Below, one piece after another: positions 22,375 to 60,293 of a stretch of 64,000 bases of DNA (position 1 is its first letter; each line of letters starts with the position of its first letter). Where the stretch lies: the sequence record MZ475892.1; one strand, given 5' to 3'. The notes beneath the pieces are model-generated. The model ran no database searches. It was not told where the DNA came from and saw only the letters and a list, made by a program, of their open reading frames with translations. The position numbers were made by a program, and so were the translations under genes.

Positions 22375-23622
22375 TTATTTACATGCTTTGATTGCATCAG
22401 TGATGAGGTACTGCATGTTCAACAGAGTAGGCTTGTTCACAGACTTAGCGCCAGTGAACTTGCCGCCCATTGTCTGAGCGGTGATCTCCCAATCGTTGAT
22501 GTCGCCATCAAAGGCAGAGAAAGGTGCCTGAATAGAGACTGTCTTGCACTTGTGTTCTTCGATAGTTGCTTCATAGTGCCAGTCTGGACCTTGGCCCATA
22601 CCATCTCCATGAACTGCGCGGAACTTGTATTTGCCGCCTGTAGCTCGCGTCAATTGATCTGCGATTTTGTTATGCTGCGCTTGAGTGAATTTCTCAGACT
22701 TGGCAGGAGTAACTTGCGCAAAAGCAATGTCGCCACCTAATGGCTGGACAGGAGGGAACAGAACATATGGACCCTTCTTAGCTGCACCGCCTTTACCATC
22801 CGTGCTTTGCACGCCAGCAACGAATGCAGCGAACGCCTTGTCGAAGTCGTTGAACGTACCCAGCTGTTTAACTTTACGATCTTCTGGATTACCATGAACA
22901 ACCTCTTCAATGTGCTCACCGAACTTCACGCTGGCCACAGTGAATCTACCTCTGCCTATGAGGTCCTTATAGGAGAATTTCATGTCAGCGCTTTCACCGA
23001 AAATGATAGCAGTGTTCGGTCCGTCGGGCGACGGTGTATAGAAGTAGAAGGAGTCGCTTGAGCCATCTGCGGCCATGCCTCCGATAGCGGAGCCAGGAAC
23101 TTTCTTCAATCCCGAGAACTTAGCAATACGCTTACCTGACAATACGTCATCGCCATCATCAGGCTCAAACAGAGTTTGGAATTGTTCCATCGTGTGAACG
23201 ACTACGCCGGAAGCAGCAGAGCCAGCAGCCTTGCCAGACTTAGCATTAGTAGCAGCTACACCACGCTTAGTTGTAGCAGCAACAGCGTTACCCGCAGCAG
23301 GTTTGATTTTGATTGCACGCAGTGCATTAATGGTAGCCACCAACGTCTTCGCTTTGTACAGGTTACGCACAGCGGTGACGAGGGTTTTACCAGCAGCTTT
23401 CTTGGCGAGGCTCTGAGTAGCATCTTCGTCTTTCAGCACGTCCAGCAGCGTGGACAACTTAGACGTGTCCAGCTCTTTGATCTTAACCAGCTCCTCCAGA
23501 CGCTTGATAATCACAGCAGCGTTCTTACCAAACAGGATAGCGGCGTTAGCCAGTTGCGACTTAGTCGCAGATTCAGACTTAACCGTCTGCTCTTTATCGA
23601 AATTCAATTTAATCAGTGACAT
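22375..23622 (-). CDS. Lys/Ala-rich putative internal head protein
   Basis: 415 aa; leader MSLIKLNF...KSESA similar to 42071 and 43077. Confidence 0.5.
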   Translation of the reverse strand: MSLIKLNFDKEQTVKSESATKSQLANAAILFGKNAAVIIKRLEELVKIKELDTSKLSTLLDVLKDEDATQSLAKKAAGKTLVTAVRNLYKAKTLVATINALRAIKIKPAAGNAVAATTKRGVAATNAKSGKAAGSAASGVVVHTMEQFQTLFEPDDGDDVLSGKRIAKFSGLKKVPGSAIGGMAADGSSDSFYFYTPSPDGPNTAIIFGESADMKFSYKDLIGRGRFTVASVKFGEHIEEVVHGNPEDRKVKQLGTFNDFDKAFAAFVAGVQSTDGKGGAAKKGPYVLFPPVQPLGGDIAFAQVTPAKSEKFTQAQHNKIADQLTRATGGKYKFRAVHGDGMGQGPDWHYEATIEEHKCKTVSIQAPFSAFDGDINDWEITAQTMGGKFTGAKSVNKPTLLNMQYLITDAIKACK

Positions 23623-23631
23623 GTTAAGTCC

Positions 23632-24186
23632 TTACTTGCGGTTTTTAGTCCAGTTAGAATTTTGAGGTTTCTTTTCGCTTTGTGGCGAAGTGTTCTCCTC
23701 GTTAATCTCTTCCTCCTCGTCCTCATCTTCGTCCTCAACGACAGGCTCAGCAGCAGGCGCGGCTTCGATCTTAGTCACTTCGAGAATTTGAGAGGGCAGT
23801 GGATTCTGATTTACAGATGAAGCGACAGCAGCAGGTTCGCTTACTGTAGGCTCTACATCAGCAGTCGCACCTACAACATGTTCGTGGACGATCTGCTTAG
23901 TCAGCAACGCACCTTTCTCAGCGAGAATCTGATCAGCACGTTCTTGGTCCCACTTAACCCACAGGATATCGAGACCCTTGTGTGCGTACATGAAACCCTG
24001 AGGCAGCTTACCACGGCCGTTGAACGGCAGACCGTTAGAAGGAACGCCTGGCTCGAACTCGTCCATCAGTTCCCACTTGCGTTTAGCCGTGATACACTTC
24101 GGTCCCCATACACCATCACACGCACCATCGTACAGATCGAGCATGGTCATGATGACTTGGAGCTTCTGATAGAATTTATTCAGCAT
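23632..24186 (-). CDS. Protein with an N-terminal peptidoglycan-binding (PG_binding_1-like) domain and an acidic tail
   Basis: KLQVIMTMLDLYDGACDGVWGPKCITA matches the LQ..L...g.y.g..DG.wGp.t..A pattern; EDEDEDEEEE tract. Confidence 0.6.
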   Translation of the reverse strand: MLNKFYQKLQVIMTMLDLYDGACDGVWGPKCITAKRKWELMDEFEPGVPSNGLPFNGRGKLPQGFMYAHKGLDILWVKWDQERADQILAEKGALLTKQIVHEHVVGATADVEPTVSEPAAVASSVNQNPLPSQILEVTKIEAAPAAEPVVEDEDEDEEEEINEENTSPQSEKKPQNSNWTKNRK

Positions 24187-24448
24187 CTTTCTTTTTCTCC
24201 GGACGAGGGACGTCTTTGCCGATGATACGTTTGAACAAACGCAGAGCCATAACAGCTTCGGTTTGAGCCATGCGAGATTGCTGCTGGAACTGCATCGGAT
24301 TTTCTTTCATCCAATCAACTACACGCTGCAACTCACGCGCAGTAATCAGCTTCTGCGCCAGCTTACCTTGAAGGTACACACGAACACCAGTAGTCGAAAT
24401 CTTCGCTGCACTGGTGCTCTCTGCCAAATTGATCACAATCTTAGTCAT
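24176..24448 (-). CDS. Small basic protein with the shared leader (MTKIVINLAESTSA)
   Basis: 90 aa; AAGGA RBS. Confidence 0.65.
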   Translation of the reverse strand: MTKIVINLAESTSAAKISTTGVRVYLQGKLAQKLITARELQRVVDWMKENPMQFQQQSRMAQTEAVMALRLFKRIIGKDVPRPEKKKDAE

Positions 24449-24465
24449 TGTCTTTTCCTTAAAAG

Positions 24466-24484
24466 AAAGGGGCCGAAGCCCCTT
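24466..24484 (-). terminator. Intrinsic terminator after the SNF2 gene
   Basis: AAGGGGC-TTCG-GCCCC-TTTCTTTT. Confidence 0.75.
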
Positions 24485-24487
24485 ATC

Positions 24488-27400
24488 TTACACTGACTTG
24501 TCTTTCGACGCAGTGAGTTTCAGTTTGGTCAACGCAGCCAGACACTGTTTCATGTTCGGGATGCTGTAGCCAGCTTTCTGAATACGGTTGATACGCGCTT
24601 TCGCACCAGCAACGTTCTTCACGAAACTAATCCACATACCAGACGAAAGGCTGAACGTACCGAACTTACGAGTGTTCGGGATTTTCGTTCCCACGAAGCG
24701 TTTCACTTTCGGGTTAGTCGCAAGGTCGAACATGATACGCAGACGATCTTCCATCACCATCGGATATGCTTTGATGTGCTTAACATCTTTCGCAGAGGTG
24801 TGACGAATCTGGAAGAACTGTTTCAACTGCGACTGTGCCTTAACAGCCAGCTGGTAGTTGAAGCTCAGCTTAGGCGTAGACTCATCGAAGAAGTCCTGAA
24901 CGAACTCCAGACGGCGAGAGGACGGACCGTCAAAGTCCAGCTTCTTAGCCTCGATGAAGTCCAAGAACTTCTCAAAGTCAGAGTAGTACGCGCAATCGAT
25001 ATACACGTAATCCCCGAACTCGGTGAACTCGAAGTCCTTGAGCGCTTTCGCATCTGGGTCGGTCGCATCTGCGTACAGAGCAACGAAGCCGTTGTACACG
25101 GTAGGCGTCAGTTCCAGAGACATATCGGTACCGTCGTCCAGTGTAACAGCAGCACCACGAACAGCCTTGCGCACTTTGTTGTCCAGCGGAGGAAGCTCAG
25201 CGGCCTTACGACGACGAACACGGGCAGCTGCCTGCTCTACGCCTTCGTTGATTGGCTTACCTTCTTCTTTGTTCGCTTTACGTTGAGTAACGCGGGCGTT
25301 CTTACGCTCTTGAGCCTCAACTTTCTTCTCGGTTGCTTTCGAGTCGGCAGTTTGAGTCTCATCGGTCACGGTGTCTTCGACTTCAACGCGCTTGGCTTCT
25401 GCTTCAACACGCTTACGGTCTTTAGCTGTCGCCCACGGCTTACGCACTTCAAAGAAGCGTTTCAGATCAGCAGGAGATACCTTACCAGCGTAATGCACTT
25501 TGTTCGCAGGCACAGTAACGATTTCCTCGCCACCAGCAAGACGAACACGCACGGTACTGATAGGGCTGTCAGCACGCAGCTTACCGTCAGCAGTACGAAC
25601 CGTAACGCTCACGATGATACCGTTACCGAACTCAGTCACAACAGGTGCACGGTTCAGCGCGTCTTTCACGTTCTCACCTGAGGAGAAGTTCTGGTTGCGT
25701 GCCCAATCAAGCAGACGCTCCAGTCCCCAGTTATGACGGTCTGGGATCTTCTGGTTAGCAACGATAGGTACCTGCTCCATGATACGGAAGTCACGCAGAG
25801 CCGGAGTAGCAGGCAGCGGCTGCATTGCTGCAATCGTTGTCTTACGCATCTCTTGGAACTCTTGCGCTTCAATATCGTTCAGGTCACGCTTGGCCAGGAA
25901 GTACGGTTTAAAGTCTTCCATCGTGTTGTTATCAATCAACAGACTTGCATTCATCTTGATTGGAGCAAGCTGATACTGGTCGAGTTTTTCGTAGCGCTGG
26001 TTACCTTTCTCGTCGAAACGAGTTTTCTCCAACGTCTTCCACATCAGACGTGCAACCTTACCTACTTCAAGAGTCTTGTTCGTCATCACCCAATCGATGA
26101 ACACGGCTTCGCGTTTCATATCGCCGGGCTTACCGTTCTCATCAAGCACGGCAGCAGCAACGTCAGGACGGAAGATACGCGCAGTAGACTGATCGTATGT
26201 ACCTGGAGACCACGGGGTGTCGCAGCGAATGATACGACTACCCATCTGCATGTTGTGGCCTTCACTGATTGCCTGTTCGTTAGCAATCAGAATCTGCACA
26301 CGGTCATCGGTCTTGAACGCGTCAAGGTTGGCCTCTTTGTTCTGGCCTAACTTACCGACTTCACCGTGATACACAACAGCGACCTTCTTATAGTTCTCAG
26401 GCAGAGAGTTATAGATTGCGTTTGCAGCACGCGTGTAGCGAGTGAACACAATCAGCTTGCCCTGAACCTCTGGCTTCCAGTAGTCCGGGTCTTCCGGAGG
26501 TGGAACCATTGAAGGAGGCAGTGTTTGACGCTGGAACTCTTCGGACTGTTTACGCGCCAGATACTTCTGACCCTGATAGACAGCCATGTCCAGTTCACGA
26601 GGAGTAACGCCCTGCGTCCAGTTAAAGATTTGCTGCTCTTTGACCAGCGGGTCACGTTCAGGCTGCACTTCAAAGTGCTTGCGAATACGCTCGATGATAG
26701 TCAGGACTTTCGCAGAAACGAACTTAGTGACACCAGCGTTTTCAAACGTCAGACGAGCAACGTCATCGCCCATCGGGTCGGTCAGCATCATCTCCATGCG
26801 CTGGAAGTACATGTTGAGGTCAGCGTTACCTGCGAGCAATGCGCCCAGGTCATCACCTTCTTCAATATCATCTTCATCAATGTCGTCAGAGGCAGTAGCT
26901 TCTGCACCGTCCTCTTCGTCATCTTCACCAGCAGATGCAGCACGGCGTTTGGCGTTGTTAGCAGCTTCCTGCAACTTCTCCAACACCTGAGCATACATCG
27001 CGTTATACACCTCTTGGTGCAGCGATGAGTTAGGCACAGTCGGGTCATCAATCTCAACCTGAATGAAGGTATCGATTGGGTTCGGCAACATGAACGCCCA
27101 GTTCTTACGCTTGAACGAGATGAACGCCGTGTGGTTAGACATACGCGAGTGAGCACGACGAATCATTTCAATGTCGTCTTTCGCGCCGTCGTATGCAACG
27201 TCGAGAGAGTCACCGAACATCGCAGGCGTCATCAATGCAGCCTGACCAACAATGTCACGCACGCGGTCAGTTACCAGAGTACCAGTAGCGATACGCGCAT
27301 AGCGAACAGATGGTGCGGTGAATACTGCTTTGGTGTTGAAGTGCACCTGAGAGCCAGACTGGCCGCCAGAGAAGTTCTTAACCTTGTGCGACTCATCCAG

Positions 27401-30322
27401 CATAACGTAGCTGAAATTGAAGCGGTTAACGAACTCAACAGCACCACGTACGCGAACACGCACACCACCAATGTCAACGTTGAACGTACCGGTCTGCAAG
27501 AAGCTCAGGCCAACGATGAAGAGGGTGTTCTGAGGAGCCTGCTTAATCACGTCGTACATACGGTCTTCACCCCAGGAGTTCACGGTGTCAGACGTAATAG
27601 GTACGGCGTTCCAACCATCAGCAATCTTGTGCAAGTCATCACACCAGTTCGATACGAGGTTGGTAGGGCAGATGATCAGAGGACGAATGTTCTCTTCACC
27701 TAGATCACTCAGCTCCTGAATGGTAGCAGCAATATCGGACAGACCGATGATTGTCTTACCACCGCCAGGCGCGATAAAGACTGTAGCGTAACGCGGACGA
27801 CGGCGAAGTGTTTTGTGCGCTTCTACCTGATGAGGTAAGAGTGCTGCACCAGCTTTGAGTCCAGGAATACGAATGTCTTCAATCGTGATACCCTGATCAG
27901 GCTTGAGGCGTTCAATCTCAGTTTCCGCAGATTCGAAGATCTCCAGAGACTTAGGAATGACAGCGCTATACATCTTGGAGAACGGCAGAATGATTTGCTG
28001 CAAACGTTCTGCGCCTGGCGCTTCGTCGCTTTCAACCAGAGAGCTAAACAGCTTCTTACGATCAGCATTGCCGATAGCAGCAGCCAGCTCACGATACAGC
28101 GCACCACCGAAGTAGTTGTTCAGTCTCGCCATGTCGCTGATTTTGGCAGTCTGACCCATCACAAAGTAATGCGTGTGATTAGGCAGAGACTCCATAGCAC
28201 CAGCAATGTCGCCGCTCATCTCAGTAACGGTAGTCGCTACCATGTTAGAGCCGCGCAGGCCAGATGCATCGTTGAGCACGCGCAGCATGATACGCATAGC
28301 AATCAGACCAGAATCACCCTGAGCCAGAGTAAAGTCATTCTCAATCAGACCCGCGTACAGGTTGTTGTCGAGAGAGCTTTCGGTCAGTGACGCGTTCTCT
28401 GCATCCATACCGATTGCAGCACGCGCTTGCTTGATCAGCGTAGGCAAATCAGGCACCAGCTTGTGGTTGAATGCGAAAGAATACGCAGCCACAGTCTGTG
28501 CGATGATGCTAACAAGGCCATCAACTTCCGAGTCTTCGGTAGTCGTGAACACGATGGTCTTGTCGTTGACGCTATCGATCAGTTTGCCTTTCGCAGCTTC
28601 CAGTTTAGCCGCCTGCAACAGCAGGTCATTAGCAACACGATACGAGGTCATGTTACCGCTAGACTGATTGCTCATGATGTTGCGGATAACGTTCGACGCT
28701 GAGCGGAAGTTAGGCGTTTCGCCAGGCTCTGCAAAGTCGTAACCCAGCATATCAGCAACGTCTAACGAGTTAGGCGCTTTCATACCGACAGTACGGGTTT
28801 CGTTAACCGACAGACCACCACCGTTCGAGGTGTTAACCACCAGCGCGAAGTCTGGGTCGACGCCGATACACACGTTGCTGAATCGCGTTAACGATTTGGC
28901 TTCCGCCTGCATCGAGTTATCGAAGTCGAGGTTGCCGTTCTGAATAGCGAAGATGTTGGTACGCAGCGTCTGGTGTTCAGTAGACAGCGGTACGCCTTTC
29001 GCAAACAGATGCTCCAGCACGCGGTTCAGTTCGGTTTCGTAGTTGCGCACCATCTCAACGTCAATGTCTTCACGGCGGGGCAACACAGACAGCGTACCGT
29101 TAGGCATGATGGTCAGATCGTTTTCATCTGCCACAACATCATGCACAGCGTAGCCGAACTTCTCACGCAGTTGTTTGAGCGCAGGCAGGCCAGTAGCAGA
29201 GGTAACGTAACGTGGGATACGCGCAGCACGCGTGATACCAGTACGAGTAGAACCACTGATACGGAAGTAATAGCTCGTCCAGCCCTGGAACCAACGATAC
29301 AGACACATGGTCTGAGTGTCAGCACCCTGAGAGATGTACTCAACCATCTCTTTGCTAAGGTTAACAATCAGGCCGCCTTCTGCACGAATGTCGGTAGCAA
29401 TTGCTACTTCGTTGAACTCCAGCGGATAGTCGTGGCTGATCTTCATCGCTTCGAGTTTGCGATCAATCATCTGCTTGCCTGGGATAGAGCGCAGGCCCAG
29501 AGTCATGAAGTCGCCGAGCGCATCAACAACGTCTTTGTCCAGATTACGGAACAGGTTGATATCCAGATTGTGCATCTTCGGGTGCACACCACGAAGCGCC
29601 GCATTGTAGATAGACCAGTCTTTGCCGAGAGGGATACGAACAACTTTGGTCTGGAACACGTTGGCGTTGGTACGCGCTTCACCGAAGATATCCTTGTACA
29701 GGGTCTTCGCGGCGTTGATAGCTGCCTGAGCAATGTCAGAGCTATACACCTGAATGTTCATCTGCTCAAAGTTAGAGTCGTTATCGACACGAGGACGATC
29801 ACTACCCTGACTGTTCGTAACGTTGAAGTTACCCGCACCAGCAGCTGGAGACTGCGGGCATGGCGTGCCTGACATGATAATGTCTTTGCCGCCTGGGTAC
29901 ACGGTACTGTTTTCGATGATAGCGCCTGAGGTGTTGCTCAAGTTTTCCGCTAACGCCGTTTTGATTTCACGCGACAGCTTACCGCTGTTCAGCAGCACCT
30001 GAATCTTGTTCGTGGACATGTCCACATATTGCTGCACACGCTTGGTGAACTCTTCTGGCGCTACTTCCAGAATGTCTTCGAACTCAGCACCATTACGGAT
30101 GATGTAGTTGAGCAAGTCGAATGCTGCATAGATACGGGCGACAGTTGACGCAGAGAACACGGCCAGTGTTTCATAGTGACGGCGTGCTTTGCCTGTCACG
30201 TACATCTTGGCCATGAGCTGCTCGGAGCCGAACGGTACAGGTTTTACCGCCAGCGCCTGATTAAAGCTATCAGCAATTTGCTGGGTCGCTGTGGCGGAGG
30301 TACTGATAATCTGATTCATCAT
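24488..30322 (-). CDS. Giant SNF2-family (SF2) helicase/translocase
   Basis: 1944 aa; LLPHQ, APGGGKT, LIICP, LDESHKVKN, ATGT, SEGHNMQ, WSPGTYDQSTARIFR; about 800 aa unassigned N-terminus. Confidence 0.9.
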   Translation of the reverse strand: MMNQIISTSATATQQIADSFNQALAVKPVPFGSEQLMAKMYVTGKARRHYETLAVFSASTVARIYAAFDLLNYIIRNGAEFEDILEVAPEEFTKRVQQYVDMSTNKIQVLLNSGKLSREIKTALAENLSNTSGAIIENSTVYPGGKDIIMSGTPCPQSPAAGAGNFNVTNSQGSDRPRVDNDSNFEQMNIQVYSSDIAQAAINAAKTLYKDIFGEARTNANVFQTKVVRIPLGKDWSIYNAALRGVHPKMHNLDINLFRNLDKDVVDALGDFMTLGLRSIPGKQMIDRKLEAMKISHDYPLEFNEVAIATDIRAEGGLIVNLSKEMVEYISQGADTQTMCLYRWFQGWTSYYFRISGSTRTGITRAARIPRYVTSATGLPALKQLREKFGYAVHDVVADENDLTIMPNGTLSVLPRREDIDVEMVRNYETELNRVLEHLFAKGVPLSTEHQTLRTNIFAIQNGNLDFDNSMQAEAKSLTRFSNVCIGVDPDFALVVNTSNGGGLSVNETRTVGMKAPNSLDVADMLGYDFAEPGETPNFRSASNVIRNIMSNQSSGNMTSYRVANDLLLQAAKLEAAKGKLIDSVNDKTIVFTTTEDSEVDGLVSIIAQTVAAYSFAFNHKLVPDLPTLIKQARAAIGMDAENASLTESSLDNNLYAGLIENDFTLAQGDSGLIAMRIMLRVLNDASGLRGSNMVATTVTEMSGDIAGAMESLPNHTHYFVMGQTAKISDMARLNNYFGGALYRELAAAIGNADRKKLFSSLVESDEAPGAERLQQIILPFSKMYSAVIPKSLEIFESAETEIERLKPDQGITIEDIRIPGLKAGAALLPHQVEAHKTLRRRPRYATVFIAPGGGKTIIGLSDIAATIQELSDLGEENIRPLIICPTNLVSNWCDDLHKIADGWNAVPITSDTVNSWGEDRMYDVIKQAPQNTLFIVGLSFLQTGTFNVDIGGVRVRVRGAVEFVNRFNFSYVMLDESHKVKNFSGGQSGSQVHFNTKAVFTAPSVRYARIATGTLVTDRVRDIVGQAALMTPAMFGDSLDVAYDGAKDDIEMIRRAHSRMSNHTAFISFKRKNWAFMLPNPIDTFIQVEIDDPTVPNSSLHQEVYNAMYAQVLEKLQEAANNAKRRAASAGEDDEEDGAEATASDDIDEDDIEEGDDLGALLAGNADLNMYFQRMEMMLTDPMGDDVARLTFENAGVTKFVSAKVLTIIERIRKHFEVQPERDPLVKEQQIFNWTQGVTPRELDMAVYQGQKYLARKQSEEFQRQTLPPSMVPPPEDPDYWKPEVQGKLIVFTRYTRAANAIYNSLPENYKKVAVVYHGEVGKLGQNKEANLDAFKTDDRVQILIANEQAISEGHNMQMGSRIIRCDTPWSPGTYDQSTARIFRPDVAAAVLDENGKPGDMKREAVFIDWVMTNKTLEVGKVARLMWKTLEKTRFDEKGNQRYEKLDQYQLAPIKMNASLLIDNNTMEDFKPYFLAKRDLNDIEAQEFQEMRKTTIAAMQPLPATPALRDFRIMEQVPIVANQKIPDRHNWGLERLLDWARNQNFSSGENVKDALNRAPVVTEFGNGIIVSVTVRTADGKLRADSPISTVRVRLAGGEEIVTVPANKVHYAGKVSPADLKRFFEVRKPWATAKDRKRVEAEAKRVEVEDTVTDETQTADSKATEKKVEAQERKNARVTQRKANKEEGKPINEGVEQAAARVRRRKAAELPPLDNKVRKAVRGAAVTLDDGTDMSLELTPTVYNGFVALYADATDPDAKALKDFEFTEFGDYVYIDCAYYSDFEKFLDFIEAKKLDFDGPSSRRLEFVQDFFDESTPKLSFNYQLAVKAQSQLKQFFQIRHTSAKDVKHIKAYPMVMEDRLRIMFDLATNPKVKRFVGTKIPNTRKFGTFSLSSGMWISFVKNVAGAKARINRIQKAGYSIPNMKQCLAALTKLKLTASKDKSV

Positions 30323-34898: not shown

Positions 34899-34899
34899 A

Positions 34900-36006
34900 T
34901 CAACCTGCCTTAGTGAGTCCCAGGTACTCAATTAAATTGCGTAGCTGGTCATTGAACCCACCGGATATAAGCGCTCTCGCCATATTCAAGTGATTCGAAG
35001 AAACTGCACGCACAACCTTAGCCTGATACTCTGGAACGTTTTGCATGTTCTGAGTCAGGTTGTAGAAATAGCTGCGCACAAAGTTAGTTCGCTCCACATT
35101 GCTCGCTTCCATATCAGACGTATCTTGCGTCGGAGTAAGAAGCATATACAGGGCAGCAAGCAGTTCAGGAGTCGGGTCAACAATCTGCGATGCGATAGCG
35201 GCACTAAGTTTCATCATGCCTTTCGCAACGAAGTCCGCGACAGTTTTGTCGATATACTCGGTGCCAGACTTGCCTACGTTCGGAAGATACAGTTTCGGCA
35301 GAATGTACATGCAGAAGTAAAGAGGGAAGTCTTTACGCATAACGTCCGAGATAAGCATCTCTGAATAGTCTTTCCAGATGTTCACGTTGTAGTGCCATTC
35401 ATCGTACGGCACAGTGCGCATCAGGTTAGACACACTCAGGTCGAGCACCTGATTGGCTGTCGTAGCCAAGTCGATGTAGTTCGCGGCAGGCGAAAGGGAC
35501 GCACTCGAAACCAATTGAACGTAGTTACGAGTCACAGCACCAACAGTGTTATAGATAACATTGAGGAACTCAAGTCCGTTGCCGTTAAGCGCAAACAACA
35601 CAGAGCGAGGTAGACCGACAGTCAGGTATTCGTTATTGTCAGCTACACCCCATAAACGCCAATAGCGCCCACGACCAAGCTGCGTCAGAGGTTGAGGCAG
35701 CACGCGGTTGGGGCGCGGCTTGAGGCAAAACGTGAAGCAGATACCGCTGTCAATCATGATCACTGAATCATCGGGGCGATTCGAGTAACCCATCGACATT
35801 TGATTGTCGGTACTGAATACGTTAACCAGAGTGAAGTTCAGGGCTTTGGTGAAAGGCATCTGAGCTTCAATTATCTGGGAGATGACTTGACGCAAGATAG
35901 TGTCAAGCACATAAGGAGAAGCACTTCGCATTTGTTGCGGTCGATACTGACCACCGAAAGTGCTTTCCTTGAATGTGCGATCTACCTTGTAGTGGGTCAT
36001 TGCCAT
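34900..36006 (-). CDS. Hypothetical protein, probably virion-associated
   Basis: 368 aa; translationally coupled in the late operon. Confidence 0.65.
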   Translation of the reverse strand: MAMTHYKVDRTFKESTFGGQYRPQQMRSASPYVLDTILRQVISQIIEAQMPFTKALNFTLVNVFSTDNQMSMGYSNRPDDSVIMIDSGICFTFCLKPRPNRVLPQPLTQLGRGRYWRLWGVADNNEYLTVGLPRSVLFALNGNGLEFLNVIYNTVGAVTRNYVQLVSSASLSPAANYIDLATTANQVLDLSVSNLMRTVPYDEWHYNVNIWKDYSEMLISDVMRKDFPLYFCMYILPKLYLPNVGKSGTEYIDKTVADFVAKGMMKLSAAIASQIVDPTPELLAALYMLLTPTQDTSDMEASNVERTNFVRSYFYNLTQNMQNVPEYQAKVVRAVSSNHLNMARALISGGFNDQLRNLIEYLGLTKAG

Positions 36007-43066: not shown

Positions 43067-43076
43067 AGAGATGACC

Positions 43077-44078: not shown

Positions 44079-44087
44079 AGCTGTTCC

Positions 44088-44684
44088 TTAGACTCTGCCG
44101 GTCATAGTAAATTCTTTGCCCGCAGAGTAATCTCCTAAGGCCGCATAAAGAGAATCACGCAACATCTTCTGAATGATATCCGAGTTATACGCGGACGCGT
44201 CGCGGAAAGCGACTTCAACAGTTTCAGTGCGTGGGTTGATCACAGCATAACGCAAAGGTGCAATCTCCTGAGCGTCACACCACAGATCGACAACGTGCTG
44301 TAGTCCAGGCGTGATCTGAATTTTGAAATCAGACAGCAAGAACACAGCACTTTGAATCGGAGGCGGAGCAGACTGAGAGACAACAGCATTGTCTCCAAGT
44401 TTCTCCATAGCCATAGATGCATTGTACACTGAGGAGAATTTCGTTCTCAGTGCAGAAGTCTGTACTACCTTATAGCTATTCGATGAAATGCCTTGACGAC
44501 GCAGCTTGGCGATACGCACAACGTAATCACCAGAATCGTCTGAGGCAAATGCAACGTAAGCGTAGCTCACGAAGCCAGGCTCCTCACTAAGCAGCTTGTG
44601 GTCGAGGGCACGAACACCCAAGACAGCACTAAGTGCCTGTAGGCCCATCTGAACTTCGCGGGACAGAGACACGTACATTTCCAT
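44088..44684 (-). CDS. Hypothetical protein with the shared leader MEMYVSLS
   Basis: 198 aa; between endolysin and the basic paralogues. Confidence 0.6.
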   Translation of the reverse strand: MEMYVSLSREVQMGLQALSAVLGVRALDHKLLSEEPGFVSYAYVAFASDDSGDYVVRIAKLRRQGISSNSYKVVQTSALRTKFSSVYNASMAMEKLGDNAVVSQSAPPPIQSAVFLLSDFKIQITPGLQHVVDLWCDAQEIAPLRYAVINPRTETVEVAFRDASAYNSDIIQKMLRDSLYAALGDYSAGKEFTMTGRV

Positions 44685-49008: not shown

Positions 49009-49202
49009 TAGATATACTCGAAGGCTTCTTCCTGAATCAAACCTTTACCGTGAGTCTGCTCGAAGATTTCGATTTCATCATCGGTGTAAGGCTCAGCAGA
49101 TTCTGCGATTACGTGATACGCAATGCTTTCATCGCGGTTGGCCAGATGCTCAGGCTTTACGATACGCCACACTGGAACTTGAATTGGTTCGCGATCAATC
49201 AT
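49008..49202 (-). CDS. Hypothetical protein
   Basis: Start moved to ATG 49202 (ATGA overlap with the upstream stop). Confidence 0.6.
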   Translation of the reverse strand: MIDREPIQVPVWRIVKPEHLANRDESIAYHVIAESAEPYTDDEIEIFEQTHGKGLIQEEAFEYI

Positions 49203-49411
49203 TGGTAAACAGTCTCCGTTACTACCCACATGTCAGGATCATTATACTTTTGACGCAGTTCTTGGAGAGCTTCGTCGGAAAGAGGTTGGCTGGTGGTGCA
49301 GACGCATTGAGCAACGACCTCCGGCTTAGAAGTAACAGGGTTAATGTCGTGATCGTGACGCATCACGTTCCACTGTTGCTTAGGGGTCATTGAAATATAA
49401 AGGTGTTCCAT
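49199..49411 (-). CDS. Hypothetical protein
   Basis: 70 aa; promoter-like motif 38 bp upstream. Confidence 0.6.
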   Translation of the reverse strand: MEHLYISMTPKQQWNVMRHDHDINPVTSKPEVVAQCVCTTSQPLSDEALQELRQKYNDPDMWVVTETVYQ

Positions 49412-49513: not shown

Positions 49514-49960
49514 TTAATATCTACGAGGCTTCTTAGGCTTCTTGATCGTAGACTTAGGACGCTTGATAGCCCGCAGTGCTTTGCGTGCTTCCACAATTTG
49601 TTTGGCTACAGTGGAACGACGAGCTTTGACCTGGTCCGTATCTTGGTCAGTGCCTTTCAGCTTATCGAGTCTGTTCCACTCTTGCACCAGACGATCAACA
49701 ACACCAGCGCGACCGACGCGTTGCTGGTTGATGCGCACAATGTCCTGATGAGTCTTCACGGAGTTTTGTGCGTCTTTCTGTTTAGCACGCGCAGATGCAA
49801 CGTGATCAGAGTTACCCTCAGCAGACTTCTCGTTAAGCTGCTTACGTCTAAGTGCCAGACGGCGTTGCGCTTGCTTGAGTTCGTCTTTGGAGTTCTCCAG
49901 TTGCGTCTGCATGTCTTCAAGAGGACTTGAGCGTGCGCTCAGACTAACGAGAAGTTCCAT
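49514..49960 (-). CDS. Basic coiled-coil protein with the shared leader MELLVSLSA
   Basis: Start moved to ATG 49960 (GAGGA RBS); K/R-rich C-terminus. Confidence 0.65.
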   Translation of the reverse strand: MELLVSLSARSSPLEDMQTQLENSKDELKQAQRRLALRRKQLNEKSAEGNSDHVASARAKQKDAQNSVKTHQDIVRINQQRVGRAGVVDRLVQEWNRLDKLKGTDQDTDQVKARRSTVAKQIVEARKALRAIKRPKSTIKKPKKPRRY

Positions 49961-49967: not shown

Positions 49968-50519
49968 TCACACAGGCTGTATGGTAATGATCTGGACGCC
50001 TTGTTCATTACGCGACTTGAGAATGCGGAAGCGGAAGTCTATTGGATAAATCCATTCGAGTTCATCCATAAGACCATCAAGAATCATCTCACGTTCTTCT
50101 TCGTCACCACCGAACTCTTTATCAAGATCAGCAGCCATGATAAGATTGTACGTGCGCTGCCAATAGTTGAAGGCTTTGTTCTTTGGCCCAGGAAGAATCT
50201 CCAGCATCGTATCTGTCTTGCCTGCCTTTGCAAAACCTTTAGCAGTAGCGAAGTCTTGACTGAACGACAGGTACTTGTTGATCATCACGAAAGGATTCTT
50301 AGCCTGCTTAAACAGAGCCATGAGTTCTTTTTCATACAGACCACGATACAGAGGCATCTCAGGACGTTCGGGATATTTAGCGATCAGATCATCAAGCGCA
50401 GGGCTGGAGCGATTAGCGTCAATCACATGCCCTTTATCGTGGAGCATAGTCCACATAATGTCTTGCTGTCTGTCGGTGTAGGCAGGTATCTTAGCACTGA
50501 GGCTAACCATGAGTTCCAT
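49968..50519 (-). CDS. Putative ADP-ribosyltransferase (R-S-E clade, VIP2/T4 Alt-Mod-like)
   Basis: LYRG, YLSFS and ELEWIYP (ExE) followed by FRILK; leader MELMVSLSA. Confidence 0.7.
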   Translation of the reverse strand: MELMVSLSAKIPAYTDRQQDIMWTMLHDKGHVIDANRSSPALDDLIAKYPERPEMPLYRGLYEKELMALFKQAKNPFVMINKYLSFSQDFATAKGFAKAGKTDTMLEILPGPKNKAFNYWQRTYNLIMAADLDKEFGGDEEEREMILDGLMDELEWIYPIDFRFRILKSRNEQGVQIITIQPV

Positions 50520-50647: not shown

Positions 50648-51196
50648 TCAGACGGTACCTAATACTTCAAGCACATCTTCGTCGTCCACACTTGCAGACC
50701 ACGAACGCATAACAGAAGCATTGCCGCGATTGCCTGTCAGCATTGATTTAACTGCTGGTGTGGCTTCGATTTCGGCATAGTGTTCCAAGAGAGCTTTGTC
50801 ATCTTTGAACCACATAATGGAGTTACCGTCCTTAGGGACGATCAAGAATTGGGTAGGCTTCTGGGTGACGTTCAACGTCAGGTAGTAATCACCAGCACCT
50901 TTAGGAGTCAGCATCGGCATTGGCTTCATCGCATACATGAAGTCCTTAGCGTGCATTAGTTTCTGATCGCCGAGCAACCAGATTGCGCCTTCTTCACCTT
51001 GACGCACAGCAGACAAATCGCCTTTACGTGTTGCAATCGTTCCGAATACATCTTTATCGAAACGTGACAGACCGAAGATCAGCGATGCGAGACGCTTCAG
51101 GTCCGGGGTCGTGCATGGACTGTTGATTACAGCCATACCCTCAGACCCAAGTGTGAATTTAGAGAGTGAAATAAAGAGTTCCATCGTAACGTCCAT
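50648..51196 (-). CDS. Hypothetical protein with the shared leader MELFISLS (alternative start 51184)
   Basis: 182 aa; late motif upstream. Confidence 0.6.
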   Translation of the reverse strand: MDVTMELFISLSKFTLGSEGMAVINSPCTTPDLKRLASLIFGLSRFDKDVFGTIATRKGDLSAVRQGEEGAIWLLGDQKLMHAKDFMYAMKPMPMLTPKGAGDYYLTLNVTQKPTQFLIVPKDGNSIMWFKDDKALLEHYAEIEATPAVKSMLTGNRGNASVMRSWSASVDDEDVLEVLGTV

Positions 51197-52618: not shown

Positions 52619-52632
52619 TTTTAGACAAAAAG

Positions 52633-52923: not shown

Positions 52924-52962
52924 AACATCTCCTGAATATTAAACCTCAACGTTCTTGAATTA

Positions 52963-52972
52963 TGTTTACAGA
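52963..52972 (-). promoter_or_regulatory. Putative replication-class promoter motif TCTGTAAACA
   Basis: 40 bp upstream of ATG 52923. Confidence 0.5.
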
Positions 52973-52975
52973 TTG

Positions 52976-53372
52976 CTTCGGTCCGTCCTTGCGATCTAAA
53001 GTCAGAATAGTCTTAAACTCCAATAAGCTCTTGTTAGAACGTATTGGAGTCCACCCTGTCAGATGACGGTCGTTCAGGGCTTTCTCCCCGCACACTTATA
53101 TAGCGCCGTGCGGCAGGCTGCGCTCGCGAGGTCTTATGTTTTCCACAGCAGGTGGTCCAGGAGGTAGCGTCCTCTGAAAAGATACCCGCCGCACAACAGC
53201 CTCGCTATCGGCCAATCAGCGATACGCGGTGTTACGCTGAATCGACCTAAGTGACTCTGGCCGAGTCGTGTACAAAAAAGAGTTCGGTCCCAATCAAAAA
53301 GATGGCGAAAAAGAAAGGGACCGAACAAAAGGCACTCAGCGCAAACTCCTTATGCACTGTTTTTGTACTTGG
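52976..53372 (-). ncRNA. Candidate structured non-coding RNA region
   Basis: About 400 nt without a credible ORF; at least six inverted repeats; late-class motif at its 5' edge. Confidence 0.35.
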
Positions 53373-53373
53373 G

Positions 53374-53381
53374 AAAATTAG
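53374..53381 (-). promoter_or_regulatory. Putative late-class promoter motif CTAATTTT with no downstream CDS
   Basis: Exact motif match, pointing into the non-coding region. Confidence 0.45.
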
Positions 53382-53408
53382 TGACATTCCCTTTTATTCA
53401 GAAAATTC

Positions 53409-54319: not shown

Positions 54320-54321
54320 GG

Positions 54322-54912
54322 CTATGCCCTCAGGTCAACCAATATAGATCCGCTTAGGTCACGCAGCATCTCTCGACCAAGAGGCGTGTACATGATTTGA
54401 TGCACAGCAATACGTTCGAGGAACTGCTTGCTGGAATGCACATCGTGTCCTGTACGCTTTCGAACAAACTCTATGATCGAGGGAGCAGGTTGAATGAGGA
54501 ACGTCAGTATCTCCGCATCGTGGAGAACACTACCCATGTCAGTGATTGGCTTTAGCTCAGTCTCCTGATCAAGGATATATCGGATAACGCGTTCCTCGTT
54601 ACCAGTTTTAGGATTATGCTTAAAGAAGGCGCGAGCAGATTCAACCATAAGTTTGAAATCATACTCGTCATCCGCAGTAGGCATTCTGAGAAAGAGAGCA
54701 GCAAGCAACAAATTTATTTCCACCTGTGGACCACGTTCAATGTTGAGCATCGCGTGTGCGGTGAGCACTACATCAAGCGCATAGTCACGGGTATACAGAG
54801 GATGAGAGGCTACTGTTCTGTCAAAATAGTCAAGGGCTGTGCGAAGTCCGTGACGAGATAACAGGTGCTCTGCCTTAACACGAGCTAGGCGTTGCACCCT
54901 AGTCTTCTCCAC
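54322..54912 (-). CDS. Hypothetical protein, possible degenerate HD-domain
   Basis: LLLAALFL and LHDAEIL at HD-like positions, but the metal-binding His/Asp are missing. Confidence 0.4.
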   Translation of the reverse strand: MEKTRVQRLARVKAEHLLSRHGLRTALDYFDRTVASHPLYTRDYALDVVLTAHAMLNIERGPQVEINLLLAALFLRMPTADDEYDFKLMVESARAFFKHNPKTGNEERVIRYILDQETELKPITDMGSVLHDAEILTFLIQPAPSIIEFVRKRTGHDVHSSKQFLERIAVHQIMYTPLGREMLRDLSGSILVDLRA

Positions 54913-55873
54913 CGATCTCTTTGAGACTGTTCTTGATTGCTTTGCGCAGCGTCTTGCCTACGTCAATGCCATCAACATGTTTTGCAAACACATGCGCAAA
55001 CAGCGTCGTCGGATTTTTCATGATTGCTTTATCGAGGTCAGGACGACCCTCAGCGATTTGCATTTCGCCAGGCCACAGTTCAGCAACGGCGGAGCTATCG
55101 TTAGCGGCGATAAGCTCAAGCTCGCGGACTGAGATAGAGTTCTGGCGTGCAATCGTTCGGAAGATGAGATCAACGAAAGGCAGGAGATCTTCTGACACAA
55201 CGTTCTTCACGTCTTTGGCATCGCCAGCACGCTGGAAGTCTTCCATGAGATCTGTCAGGACTTTCTTGTCGATCTTATGCACGTTGCGCAGTTTGTTGAA
55301 CAACACCATCCAGCGAACTTTACGCTTGGAACTAATCAGGTGCGTCCACACACTTTCACCGAGAGCAATCAGCAAACGATTATACACGTCAACTGAAACT
55401 GACTCACGGCTAACGAACACGGTCAGCTCATCATACCACTCGTCTTTCTTAAACTTAGAACGGAACGAGTGTGTCTTGGATCCTGACTGCTGGACGAAGT
55501 TGATGCGCTTACAGCGGCGCAGTGCTTCATGCAGCTTGTACTTCTCGATCACTTTCGGGAGTCGCTTCACTCCCTTACGACACGCTTTGGCGCAATCGGT
55601 TTCACGACCGTAGAGCGCGAGAGAAGGAAGGCCAGACATTACAGCGAGGCTCGCGTAAGGTCGGACAGTAACTCCACAAACAGACATGCCGGGTTCCGGG
55701 TCTTTGCCCAGTACGGCAAGAACATCGCCTGCTTTAGGACTGAACTTAATTGACTCTGGGTCAGGAGTACCGAGTGTTGCAGCCAGAAGGCCGACGGTCT
55801 TGCCTGTCGCCAGAACCAAATGATTTTTGTTGCCCTGCCTCACGACAAGGTAATCTTGCTCACTATGTTTCAT
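54899..55873 (-). CDS. Hypothetical protein
   Basis: 324 aa; operon context. Confidence 0.7.
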   Translation of the reverse strand: MKHSEQDYLVVRQGNKNHLVLATGKTVGLLAATLGTPDPESIKFSPKAGDVLAVLGKDPEPGMSVCGVTVRPYASLAVMSGLPSLALYGRETDCAKACRKGVKRLPKVIEKYKLHEALRRCKRINFVQQSGSKTHSFRSKFKKDEWYDELTVFVSRESVSVDVYNRLLIALGESVWTHLISSKRKVRWMVLFNKLRNVHKIDKKVLTDLMEDFQRAGDAKDVKNVVSEDLLPFVDLIFRTIARQNSISVRELELIAANDSSAVAELWPGEMQIAEGRPDLDKAIMKNPTTLFAHVFAKHVDGIDVGKTLRKAIKNSLKEIGGED

Positions 55874-55884
55874 AACAACCCTAG

Positions 55885-56397: not shown

Positions 56398-56408
56398 GTT
56401 AACCTCTT

Positions 56409-56564: not shown

Positions 56565-56576
56565 ATATCACCTCGA

Positions 56577-57080: not shown

Positions 57081-57102
57081 AATAGAACTCAACAATAGTG
57101 CA

Positions 57103-57112
57103 TGTTTACAGA
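57103..57112 (-). promoter_or_regulatory. Putative replication-class promoter motif TCTGTAAACA
   Basis: Intergenic, 23 bp upstream of ATG 57080. Confidence 0.45.
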
Positions 57113-57113
57113 A

Positions 57114-57638: not shown

Positions 57639-57641
57639 ACC

Positions 57642-59246: not shown

Positions 59247-59275
59247 ATCGTGATTACCTGAGTTTTTCTATCTGA

Positions 59276-59285
59276 TATTTACAGA
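59276..59285 (-). promoter_or_regulatory. Putative replication-class promoter motif TCTGTAAATA
   Basis: 30 bp upstream of ATG 59246. Confidence 0.55.
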
Positions 59286-59527
59286 TTCAGACTTATCTTA
59301 TTGACCCGTACGATACAGCGCTTGGTACGGCTACAGCTACTACAGCGGAGCTAGCGGGATACGCGCTTGGCTTGCTCGAAACATGGAAGGAGAGGTACAT
59401 CTTTAGGCGGCACGTTTTGTAGAGGCTGAATCCGAGAGATTAGCACTATCAATGCCCCTCCACCCATGCTGGAGCTGCTTAGAATAGCATTCTGTTAGGA
59501 TAATTTAGGTCGTCTAAACCGTGTAAA

Positions 59528-59622
59528 TTTTCCCGAGAAAACAGACGATTTTCCGTAAAACACGCCCGTTTTCAGACAAAAACCAGAAAAATCTTAATAA
59601 AATCAAGGACTTTTCCGAAAAC
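59528..59622. repeat. Four phased TTTTC-n-AAAAC quasi-palindromes (candidate origin iterons / bent DNA)
   Basis: Copies start at 59528, 59549, 59569 and 59611 (spacings 21, 20, 42 bp). Confidence 0.6.
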
Positions 59623-59633
59623 TACTCAGGAAA

Positions 59634-60293
59634 TCACTTCTTGCGAGAGATCTGTTGGTTCAATTTCTTACCAATTTGAGACAAAACGCGCTCAACGGTC
59701 TCTCCGTCACGCTCCCCGATAGCCATAGCGAGCCTTTCGCCCTGTTCACGCGATAGCTCAGGCATAATCAGCTTGAGCATCTTTGATCGCGCCTTTGCAG
59801 ACTTTGATTTGCCTTTTGACAGCGATTGCGTTTCCATTTCGGCAGCAACACGGCTCATTGTGCGCTGCACGCGACGATCTGCGAATATATCACCGAAGAT
59901 ATTGCCAAACAGGTCCTGGAACGAGCGTCCGCCACCAAAGATCTCATCCTTAGTGAAGCGCACTTCCTTTCCTAGCGCATTACGCTTAACGCTGTGGGTG
60001 CTTTCCACTTCGTTTTGGACGCGTGCACCTTCGATGAAGTTCTCATCAGGCCGCGATTTCTTACCTTCAGCACCGGGCTTAGTAACGCCGTTACGCAGCT
60101 CAGCACGCCCTTCAACGGCCGCATCAGGGTCAAACATGTCATCAGTGTTGACGCTCTGATTAGGGTCAAAGGGAATCTTGTCTGTCAGCTTGTTTTCATC
60201 TGGCCACGAACGAGGGATATCCGACGCCGGTTGTGGGCTATTCGTCATATCACCGTTCTTCTCGCTGTTCAGACTCACATAAATCTTGGTCAT
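59634..60293 (-). CDS. Low-complexity putative internal head protein with leader MTKIYVSL
   Basis: 219 aa; AGGAG RBS. Confidence 0.55.
   Translation of the reverse strand: MTKIYVSLNSEKNGDMTNSPQPASDIPRSWPDENKLTDKIPFDPNQSVNTDDMFDPDAAVEGRAELRNGVTKPGAEGKKSRPDENFIEGARVQNEVESTHSVKRNALGKEVRFTKDEIFGGGRSFQDLFGNIFGDIFADRRVQRTMSRVAAEMETQSLSKGKSKSAKARSKMLKLIMPELSREQGERLAMAIGERDGETVERVLSQIGKKLNQQISRKK

Follow-up and report, generated by a model that had tools for sequence, protein, structure and literature searches.

In phage T4, a capsid targeting sequence (CTS) of 10 to 20 residues brings the internal proteins and Alt into the scaffolding core (Mullaney and Black 1996, summarised in PMC5694885); this sequence is removed by gp21, the same enzyme that chops the scaffold and trims the coat protein (PMC5694885). 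All characterised proteases of the gp21 type, among them those of T4, phiKZ and SPN3US, cleave after Glu, and in SPN3US the paralogues gp53 and gp54 present an identical 15-residue N-terminus on diverged bodies (PMC5694885). Here we describe a short leader shared by the N-termini of otherwise unrelated proteins in a 64,000-nucleotide stretch of DNA (hereafter "the window"), which was identical to record positions 124001 to 188000 of the Erwinia jumbo phage pEa_SNUABM_34 (MZ475892.1; 264,306 bp), a record in which every coding sequence bears the GenBank product label "hypothetical protein". By analogy with T4, this leader most likely plays the part of the CTS in jumbo phages of the Lu11/PaBG/Y3 lineage. 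A literature search yielded no description of a shared leader in this group.

pEa_SNUABM_34, whose near-twin is pEa_SNUABM_7 (genus Snuvirus), grouped with the Lu11/PaBG/Y3 lineage according to its coat protein and published comparisons. The so-called Lupandier group includes the Dickeya phages AD1 and JA11, the Erwinia phages Y3, Yoloswag and Alexandra, and the Pseudomonas phages PaBG and Lu11 (PMC7412058); RSL1-like phages lie further out. Given this placement, the possibility of a phiKZ-like phage with S/A/G-x-E processing was dropped, and the cleavage rules of phiKZ and SPN3US are consequently not simply transferable. All 341 annotated proteins (83,909 residues) served as the proteome for motif statistics. 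The genomes used for comparison were those of Y3 (Sasquatchvirus), AD1 and SNUABM_22 (Alexandravirus), JA11 (Salmondvirus), Yoloswag (Yoloswagvirus), the Yersinia phage fHe-Yen9-02 (Yen9-02), PaBG, Lu11 and RSL1, together with the metagenomic contigs L035 and L036.

Two classes of N-terminal leader

The original prediction was that about nine unrelated proteins of the window start with a single hydrophobic pattern, phi-x-phi-[SN]-[LFM] (phi, hydrophobic residue), often accompanied by an S-x-S-A element. All ten N-termini on which it was built were recovered on the minus strand at the positions assigned to them, as were ISTSA in the large helicase g181 and SSISA in g189 (Table 1). The unified pattern proved too loose, with 22 N-terminal matches in the proteome, several of them spurious. 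For its part, the S-x-S-A element was borne out by the comparison of orthologues, which revealed it as the common core of two leader classes. In class B (M-x-phi-phi-[VI]-S-L-S-[A/K/R/H/Q]), the core follows directly after M-x-phi-phi, as in MELMVSLSA; its members are g198, g206, g207, g208 and g220 within the window and g125, g232, g242 and g251 outside it. In class A (M-[ST]-L-I-K-[IL]-N-[LF]-x-[ED]-x(2-6)-[VKA]-S-E-S-A), an amphipathic, strand-like [LI]-I-K-[IL]-N-L-x-[ED] lies ahead of the core, as in MSLIKINLAEFAVSESA, and the members are g178, g180, g196 and g197 in the window plus g252 outside. The core common to both, [VIL]-S-x-S-A, lies within the first ~20 residues; the whole leader measures 8 to 17 residues and is carried by at least 12 protein families.

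Among the 341 proteins, the motifs were enriched at the N-termini above chance. The sequence [VI]SLS occurred at 13 sites in the proteome, 7 of which started within residues 1 to 9 (8 with the corrected start of g198; see below), compared to 0.48 expected, while [VIL]S.SA occurred at 20 sites, with 10 in the first 21 residues against 1.7 expected. For phi-phi-[VI]S[LIM][SNT], 8 of 9 sites were N-terminal, and for [IV][KV][IL]N[LF], 4 of 4. To avoid patterns picked by eye, all 3-mers and 4-mers were also ranked by their enrichment in residues 2 to 13. The top 4-mers were SLIK (4/4 genome sites; p 6e-9) and VSLS (6/11; p 1e-7), and the top 3-mer was VSL; VSLS was thus observed 6 times among the N-termini, whereas no 4-mer exceeded 4 occurrences in the 300 shuffles. 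The same regular expressions gave one match in 164 kb of unrelated viral DNA versus 8 to 10 in the 64-kb window. We regard it as practically certain that the pattern is real and functional.

The conserved serines were encoded by both TCN and AGY codons among the carriers, and the other positions varied synonymously (for example, GTG TCA CTC TCT, GTT AGT CTG AGC and GTA AGC CTT AGC). This switching indicates that it is the peptide, and not a nucleotide signal, that is conserved, by selection on the protein; a motif acting at the DNA or RNA level, such as a promoter or downstream box, was ruled out on these grounds. The leaders failed the criteria for Sec, Tat and lipoprotein signals, since the hydrophobic run spans at most 5 residues and gives way to polar, disorder-prone sequence, with neither an RR motif nor a lipobox cysteine. 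The sequence behind the leader tends to remain polar and disorder-prone until the body begins, and residues 11 to 35 of the carriers scored higher for disorder than the corresponding residues of other proteins (Mann-Whitney p 0.001, by a composition proxy). Pfam and NCBIfam searches of the carriers returned nothing useful.

Table 1. Leader carriers, dropped candidates and related genes of pEa_SNUABM_34. Positions are those of the window unless marked as record or L005 positions; aa, amino acids
Gene	Position	Strand	Product or assignment	N-terminus
g178	22375-23622	-	415 aa; paralogue of g252 (outside window)	class A, MSLIKLNFDKEQTVKSESATK (MSLIKLNFD...VKSESA)
g180	24176-24448	-	90 aa	class A, leader MTKIVINLAESTSAAK; N-terminus MTKIVINLAESTSA
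g181	24488-30322	-	1944-aa SNF2-type helicase; probable carrier	MMNQIISTSATATQ
g189	36006-37295	-	429 aa, beside head-tail connector gene; phrog_36434; possible carrier, uncertain	MAKTAKNNEVSSISASV
g196	42071-43066	-	331 aa, basic, K/A-rich	class A, MSLIKINLADHAVSESAAKK (MSLIKINLA..VSESA)
g197	43077-44078	-	333 aa; paralogue of g196	class A, MSLIKINLAEFAVSESAKAK (MSLIKINLA..VSESA)
g198	44088-44684	-	198 aa; start at 44684	class B, MEMYVSLSRE
g205	49199-49411	-	70 aa; rejected member	MEHLYISMT
g206	49514-49960	-	148 aa, coiled-coil-like	class B, MELLVSLSARSSPLED (MELLVSLSA)
g207	49968-50519	-	183 aa, ADP-ribosyltransferase-like	class B, MELMVSLSAK
g208	50648-51184	-	178 aa	class B, MELFISLSKF
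g220	59634-60293	-	219 aa; disorder-prone stretch after leader	class B variant, MTKIYVSLNSEKNGD (MTKIYVSLN)
g125	record 90981-91436		Nudix hydrolase	class B
g154	L005:15952-17922		NAD-dependent DNA ligase; dropped candidate	MKVRLSISAS, MKVRLSISASVSLK
g144	head gene block		134 aa, acidic, scaffold-like	
g145	head gene block		major head protein (coat); phrog_2522	
g146	head gene block, between g145 and g147		virion structural protein	
g147	L005:8584-10650 (record 108584-110650)		688 aa, hyper-acidic; two genes upstream of coat gene	
g148	L005:10729-11859		KMPT-N metallopeptidase-like; between scaffold-like gene g147 and protease gene g149	
g149	head gene block		head maturation protease; phrog_18299, E 1e-125	
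g152	L005:13803-15035		family-2 glycosyltransferase	
g214	54899-55873		324-aa "peptidase" (phrog_17197)	

The constancy of the core was clearest in g178, whose orthologues kept S-x-S-A while the remainder of the leader varied: TVKSESATK in this phage, MSLIKLGNLDGDVVESTSAV (...VVESTSAVTK) in Y3, ...GAVVSISAATK in SNUABM_22 and ...GTVVSVSAANK in AD1. The constant part, [V]-S-x-S-A, is that of class B VSLSA. For g180, proteins of 110 to 112 aa with similar leaders, and related to it by the leader likeness only, were found in Y3 (Y3_196, MTVIKLNLKDAVPSESSV), AD1 (MSLIKLNLKEAVKSESAAA), SNUABM_22 (MTLIKLNLDESVASTSANA) and Yen9-02 (MTAIKLNLGKNVKSESSV). In tblastn searches with g197, distant relatives matched the N-terminal 55 to 190 residues only, which makes the N-terminus its most conserved part.

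Among the class B carriers, the predicted presence of an enzyme resembling ADP-ribosyltransferases (ART) was substantiated, as g207 matched phrog_832, "RNA polymerase ADP-ribosylase", with an E value of 2.6e-13 over residues 14 to 171. All 7 homologues of g207 (66 to 84% identity, mostly metagenomic) kept S6, L7, S8 and A9, and positions 2 to 5 varied. In its AlphaFold2 (AF2) model, a poor one built from 8 sequences (predicted local distance difference test [pLDDT] 57), residues 1 to 39 had a pLDDT below 50 and the leader was a coil not modelled within the fold. The GenBank start of g198 (pEaSNUABM34_00198) is a GTG at 44672, 12 nucleotides inside the frame; the ATG at 44684, which gives MEMYVSLS, is the right start because orthologues in six other phages share this N-terminus (Y3 MKIFVSLAAT, AD1 MEIYVSLSKA, SNUABM_22 MQIFVSLSKG, JA11 MEILVSISAA, Yen9-02 MRISISLSAI and Yoloswag MEKVVSLSAD). 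Orthologues of g206 began with MKILISLSARTSPLED in both Y3 and SNUABM_22, MEIMVSLSVRSSPLED in AD1, MQVLISLSKMKSPLEE in JA11, MEILISLSQSK in Yoloswag and MEIVISLSMRNSPLQE in Yen9-02. Those of g208 began with MEIFVSLSKI in Y3, AD1 and SNUABM_22, MRIFVSMSGL in Yen9-02 and MQIVFSLSKV in JA11, and those of g220, which has a disorder proxy of 0.88, with MRVMISLNSEKNGD in Y3, MTRIMISLNSEANGD in SNUABM_22 and MARIKISLSGEANGD in AD1.

Two further products of the window carry the core with less of the leader. In g181, I-S-[TR]-S-A at residues 5 to 10 was kept in four phages (this phage, Y3, AD1 and SNUABM_22). In g189, SSIS[AT] was kept in Y3, AD1 and SNUABM_22, with no hydrophobic strand ahead of it. 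The C-terminal helicase part of g181 gave weak matches, all far below the cut-offs, to anti-phage proteins that contain a helicase (phospholipase-D-like, DISARM DrmD and Zorya ZorD).

Beyond the window, carriers were g125, g232, g242, g251, g252, g139 and g155. The Pfam domain of g125 starts at residue 22, and g139 and g155 begin with ML-IFLSESAS and MVLSESAS, respectively, both in this phage and in Y3.

Several look-alikes were dropped. The motif of the ligase g154 was not found in Y3, PaBG or Lu11; in Y3, an upstream stop codon leaves a shorter N-terminus starting with MQISLKRL, and the leader-like N-terminus of g154 may be a recent gain or chance. The product of g114 (MSLIKVKTSL) is one of a group of paralogues that also includes g109, g113 and g115. 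Class B-like N-termini with Ala in place of Ser in Lu11 and PaBG (MKVYLAIAAS, MQLLIAMASA and MIISLAAAAA) were too degenerate to be claimed. Similar N-termini of the type MQY, MQF or MLY (e.g., MQYHLTNYGVF, MLYLAQANTTF and MQYISSFFGL) were seen on proteins of 250 to 310 aa whose number varies between genomes (window positions 39451-40221 and 40734-41558; AD1 gp186 and gp194; SNUABM_22 gp192, gp194 and gp201; Y3_189 and Y3_190); these appear unrelated to the leader.

Conservation and modularity of the leader

The figure of about nine carriers in the window held in substance: 9 of the 10 listed kept the leader in other genera (Y3, AD1, SNUABM_22, JA11, Yoloswag and the Yersinia phage), and more were found outside the window. 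The one that failed was g205, whose orthologues begin with MEQTFNTRT (Y3), MNQTINIRG (AD1) and MERNTLINIS (SNUABM_22), so that its MEHLYISMT is probably due to chance. The leader was retained in essentially every carrier with an orthologue in Y3, AD1, SNUABM_22, Yoloswag, JA11 or Yen9-02, and its known distribution covers Snuvirus, Alexandravirus, Sasquatchvirus, Yoloswagvirus, Salmondvirus, the Yersinia phage, PaBG and a 311-kb metagenomic contig. Across these genera it was conserved more than the bodies. Some genomes contained additional carriers without a counterpart here, namely Y3_193 (MQIFVSLSSP), JA11 gp188 (MQILVSLSNA) and gp190 (MELLISLSKP), Yoloswag gp197 (MEIVISFSAD) and Yen9-02 gp087 (MIITISLSSG).

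That the leader is an add-on module is best indicated by the Nudix hydrolase. The PaBG orthologue, gp279, begins with MAVRKQSGCVVF... and aligns with ...ARKQSGVVPY of g125 from "RKQSG" onwards; it lacks exactly the 16-residue leader MMLNVSLSAKLPSEKK of g125, a leader that the Y3 orthologue has. At the gene position of g196/g197, JA11 carries gp180, a protein of 330 aa with a class B leader (MKVILSLSAVAP) and no BLAST similarity to g196 or g197, the equivalence being one of position and size only. In Yoloswag gp187 (L031:16487-18124; 545 aa), which matches window positions 42071 to 44684, and likewise in gp089 of fHe-Yen9-02 (L030:16767-18440; 557 aa), the g198-like and g196-like parts formed a single open reading frame (ORF), with the g196-like part second and its class A leader consequently internal (...NHD-MSLIRLTIPGQELVSESAKAPSYKF and ...KSN-MKITLSLCSDVISESAKTPSYKF, respectively). 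Such a fusion would be a polyprotein cleaved at the leader or else contain an internal start; in both cases the two carriers are linked. Judged from these alignments, the leader is modular, being conserved across genera on diverging and unrelated bodies such as ART and Nudix.

The claim that the bodies lack similarity, except for the g196/g197 pair, held with an addition. An all-against-all BLAST of the bodies gave three pairs only (g196/g197, g178/g252 and g139/g155), and hidden paralogy was discarded as a general explanation. These pairs, and the chance motif of g205, are what could be cited for an origin by chance or by common descent, in which old paralogues would have retained their first strand only, as a peptide without function. 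We consider such an origin extremely unlikely: the enrichment statistics do not fit it, the folds of ART and Nudix are unrelated, no leader is present on the Nudix orthologue of PaBG, and the leader is kept where the bodies have diverged beyond detection. The statistics and the Nudix comparison largely refute it.

Head-assembly genes and virion proteins

The S-x-S core recurred in the head gene block located just upstream of the window (record ~102-120 kb). The putative protease of this block, g149, was modelled by AF2 from a 42-sequence alignment with an overall pLDDT of 85.7, falling below 50 for residues 6 to 19. The top three Foldseek matches of the model were chains of T4 gp21 (5JBL; probability 0.87 to 0.90, E 0.02, template modelling [TM] scores 0.34/0.49), with all other Protein Data Bank (PDB) matches at a probability of 0.05 or less. 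Together with its PHROG match, the model lends moderate support to a gp21-like prohead protease with the assemblin fold. PaBG gp226, 47% identical to g149, was annotated by the PaBG authors as "prohead core protein protease". Of the 42 diverse homologues, which reach down to ~40% identity, about 30 carry phi-x-S-x-S-F-[DSG] in their first 10 to 25 residues, with a free middle residue (IRSESFD, IPSHSFD, IASTSFD, FSSKSFD, LVSHSFG, MESTSFS and ELSLSFS), and in the confident model of g149 the S-x-S-F segment was disordered. Homologues are also present on the long contigs P0018, P0025, P0033, P0051, P0056, P0060 and P0063. PDB sequence searches with g149, the ART g207 and the g214 peptidase gave nothing useful.

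The highest S-x-S densities among the 341 proteins were those of g144 and g147 (3.7 and 3.2 per 100 residues, respectively), whose genes lie on either side of the pair formed by the coat gene and g146. Four copies of FDSES were found in g147, together with FDSLST, two of QSQSSA, and LVSLSR, the last being the class B leader sequence itself. In Y3, gp141 contains five [VIF][DE]SES[SG] units, FDSLSAA and LVSLSRA, and in PaBG, gp82 contains ILESLSSS, LIESLSSV and LTLSVSS. With its repeated FDSES units, g147 has the look of a scaffolding protein. It is labelled "ATPase" by RefSeq relatives and PHROG, and its PaBG homologue "60S ribosomal-like protein"; no ATPase motif was noticed in it. The coat protein has E-L-A-L-S-x-S-T-G-E (x = Q, E or S) in its N-terminal region in this phage, Y3, PaBG and contig L036, and PSVSISNDG in contig L035. 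At the C-terminus of g144, this phage and Y3 have ...DSESS-[ST]LIR[LI]RLD, and other members of the family end in GRIRIKL (Lu11), GRITIQL (L036) or PIQIIE (L035). Members of the g144 family thus end in an IKINL-like strand, which in the Erwinia phages comes after S-E-S-S; this is the mirror order of the class A leader.

These occurrences bear on whether the leader might be a signal for stability or expression (a degron, an anti-degron or an aid to translation initiation) selected independently in many genes. Its confinement to the extreme N-terminus would suit such a signal, as would the frequent E, K, S or T at position 2, and short hydrophobic N-terminal motifs are known as tags for AAA+ proteases. 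Nevertheless, we hold this very unlikely, since the TCN/AGY serine switches speak against a signal in the mRNA, and an N-degron leaves unexplained both the internal occurrences (in the scaffold-like proteins, the coat propeptide and the fusion ORFs) and the mirror-order C-terminal ones.

A link to virions was provided by PaBG, a distant relative whose coat protein is 45% identical to that of this phage. Class A leaders were found on four of its proteins: gp83 (MLIKINLLEAVAAK; MLIKINLLEAV...), gp219 (MAAIKINLAEAANRD), gp220 (MALIHINADGSFEAV) and the product of an unannotated ORF of 78 aa (MRIKINLNEALAGD; L024:8957-9193) lying between gp84 and gp83, directly upstream of the virion-protein gene gp83. 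The bodies of gp83, gp219 and gp220 had no BLAST match in the proteome of this phage. PaBG gp202 was 28.6% identical to g181 over ~1990 aa and begins with MGSLFTLNSLSAAID, with SLSA at residues 9 to 12. In the published PaBG virion proteome, gp83 is a 35-kDa band and gp202, a 221-kDa helicase, is band 1, the largest; the same paper reports a loss of ~20% of the coat-protein mass and the processing of several virion proteins (PMC7412058). For Y3, AD1 and the Yersinia phage, the literature search found no virion proteome. In the 311-kb metagenomic contig, whose protease is 48% identical, genes adjoining the protease gene carry MAQIFISESASAK, MEVFISNSATSTQ and MQKIDLSLISESSDK, and the system therefore appears old.

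In place of the head, the leader could dock its carriers onto another hub, such as a phage chaperone, a replication or recombination factory, or a membrane complex, the likeness to head proteins then being a coincidence or reflecting a general interface for beta-strand addition. The carriers of the g205-g208 region, g232, g242 and g251 are in fact located among replication, recombination and early-type genes, and they include enzymes acting on nucleotides or proteins. T4 genes for packaged proteins are also scattered outside the head cluster, though, and a different hub would account neither for S-x-S on the disordered N-terminus throughout the head-protease family, in the scaffold-like proteins and in the coat propeptide, nor for the presence of PaBG gp83 and gp202 in virions. 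We judge this alternative unlikely.

Alternatively, the leader could be a propeptide or tag serving proteolytic control only, for zymogen-like activation or timed destruction by g149 or by some other cytoplasmic phage peptidase, with no head targeting. The S-x-S core is common to proteins expected to be substrates of the head protease, enzymes such as an ART or a Nudix might harm the cell that makes them and gain from being produced in a pro-form, and two more peptidase-like genes, g148 (KMPT-N) and g214 (phrog_17197), are present. Against this, gp21-type proteases act inside proheads (PMC5694885, in keeping with T4), so that being a substrate normally implies being inside; leaders of 8 residues are unlikely to mask an active site; and the class A leaders of PaBG are conserved though they lack S-x-S. 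Control by proteolysis alone is hence quite unlikely.

As to the peptidase-like genes themselves, g148 is a second potential protease of the head gene block, and g214 was present in all relatives examined. The latter showed no similarity to g149 or to any PDB sequence.

Other features of the region were noted in passing. The glycosyltransferase gene g152 adjoins the head protease gene and is kept in Y3, PaBG, Lu11, L035 and L036. Sheath-like genes are located at window positions 226-2403 and 9269-10945 and at L005:3379-5064, two of them named tail sheath in RefSeq (390 and 328 aa). Proteins of 558 and 561 aa start alike (MPVNSTHPSAGVY and MLIPNHPSPGVY) and match the pair of sheath proteins reported as a feature of the PaBG group. 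Two gaps of ~390-480 bp (window 52924-53408 and 59247-59633) are without annotated genes in an otherwise tight minus-strand array; scans of the window for tRNAs and Rfam families were empty. An IMG/VR scan with the clamp loader recovered two close relatives and nothing else.

Proposed role and comparison with known systems

On balance, the leader probably serves as a signal for prohead targeting or processing by which proteins are loaded into the phage head. We favour capsid targeting because the S-x-S core recurs in the head protease, the scaffold-like g144 and g147 and the coat propeptide, and because gp83 and gp202, which bear these elements, are published components of PaBG virions. Modularity and conservation are likewise best fitted by the T4-like address label with an S-x-S-A processing element that the original prediction envisaged, even if its single pattern was too loose and one of its members fell out. 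In such a pathway, the hydrophobic strand of the leader would dock cargo onto the scaffolding core or the inner face of the shell during head assembly, and the protease g149 would enter the prohead in the same way, through S-x-S-F on its own disordered N-terminus. S-x-S would be the element recognised by g149, which, once the shell is complete, would trim the leaders, fragment g147 and g144 and remove the coat propeptide. The predicted cargo comprises the ART, the Nudix hydrolase, basic K/A-rich proteins, coiled-coil proteins and probably the 1944-aa SNF2 helicase; in mature form it would stay in the head with the DNA and probably enter the host at infection. Ejection into the host would be a further step, suggested by the precedents of T4 and SPN3US and by the nature of the cargo.

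Several observations weigh against this interpretation. The proteomic link consists of 2 of 14 bands of a distant relative, PaBG, obtained by matrix-assisted laser desorption/ionization of gel bands, and no class B carrier is among them. The PaBG class A leaders lack S-x-S-A, so that the two elements are separable and the roles assigned to them are guesses. In the coat protein, S-x-S is not universal, being changed in Lu11 (LSSATGE) and missing from RSL1, and the Foldseek match of g149 to gp21 is marginal (E 0.02, TM 0.34/0.49). Many carrier genes are located among replication and recombination genes and not in the head gene block. The leader-like N-terminus of the ligase g154 has no counterpart in Y3 or PaBG, which indicates that the pattern can easily be gained or lost. 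Finally, Glu is not conserved between the two serines of S-x-S; the residue there is often Glu in the Erwinia phages (SES) and free overall.

Set against the after-Glu rule of gp21-type proteases, this free residue implies either a new protease specificity or that S-x-S serves for docking or recognition, with the cut made elsewhere. In class A, a conserved [LIV]-x-[ED] follows immediately after IKINL (NLAE, NLLE, NLNE and NLKE), and class A leaders may be cut after it instead of at S-x-S; class B has no conserved Glu. The coat proteins have L-x-E-A near residue 88 (ELFAE-AAAD, ELLAE-AVAD and EVLRE-AMVD), and a cut predicted there would fit the mass loss of PaBG about equally well.

If the leader is an address label, it offers a sequence rule for predicting which proteins of poorly annotated jumbo phages are carried in the virion and probably delivered to the host, with the predicted ART and Nudix cargo as plausible factors of host takeover or counter-defence. 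A short, removable capsid-targeting leader, established experimentally in T4, would then also exist, built on another motif, in a jumbo-phage lineage unrelated to T4; the gp21/assemblin protease fold could have a new cleavage specificity; and a very short tag would be available for packaging reporters into large capsids, as has been done with the T4 CTS. More tentatively, and with less than even odds, a large, old jumbo-phage clade (Lu11, PaBG, Y3, AD1, JA11 and uncultivated relatives of 270 to 310 kb) might load arbitrary enzymes for injection by a transferable code, a hydrophobic strand plus S-x-S-A in 8 to 17 residues, read by a gp21-fold protease of S-x-S instead of after-Glu specificity, so that the injected set could be read from the genome. 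Here that set would consist of the ART, the Nudix hydrolase, the 1944-aa SNF2 helicase, basic DNA-binding-like proteins and several unknowns. The analysis also bears on annotation, with a corrected start for g198, a probable scaffold labelled "ATPase" and an unannotated PaBG ORF.

Compared with the T4 CTS of IPI-III and Alt, the leader is alike in being an N-terminal peptide of ~10 to 20 residues on unrelated proteins, an ADP-ribosyltransferase included, in its association with a gp21-like protease, in the short motif shared with scaffold or core proteins and the coat propeptide, and in being more conserved than the body. It differs in that the T4 cleavage site is hydrophobic-x-Glu, whereas [VIL]-S-x-S-A and IKINL are found here, in two leader classes and with no conserved Glu in class B; moreover, this lineage is unrelated to T4 at the sequence level, and packaging and cleavage are predictions here. 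With phiKZ, 201phi2-1 and SPN3US it shares its setting, namely jumbo phages in which a gp21-like protease processes many proteins of the head interior. The propeptides of those phages, however, are mostly longer than 100 residues and are cut after Glu at S/A/G-x-E or A-x-E, while the leader here has 8 to 17 residues, is found on non-paralogous proteins and has no Glu conserved at the motif.

The cargo-loading peptides of encapsulins are also short and modular, are carried by unrelated enzymes through a flexible linker and, as the leader here might do, bind the interior of an HK97-fold shell; unlike it, they are usually C-terminal and are not removed, and neither a protease nor DNA packaging is involved. 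In phage P1, the Dar antirestriction proteins include DarB, a large helicase/methyltransferase packaged into heads through N-terminal determinants. The likeness lies in a very large helicase-type head component, the PaBG homologue of g181 being a virion band; the sequences are unrelated, and the signals of P1 do not consist of a short motif held in common. The principle of the leader is already known; the novelty lies in its motif and lineage, in a possible protease specificity and in the predicted list of cargo.

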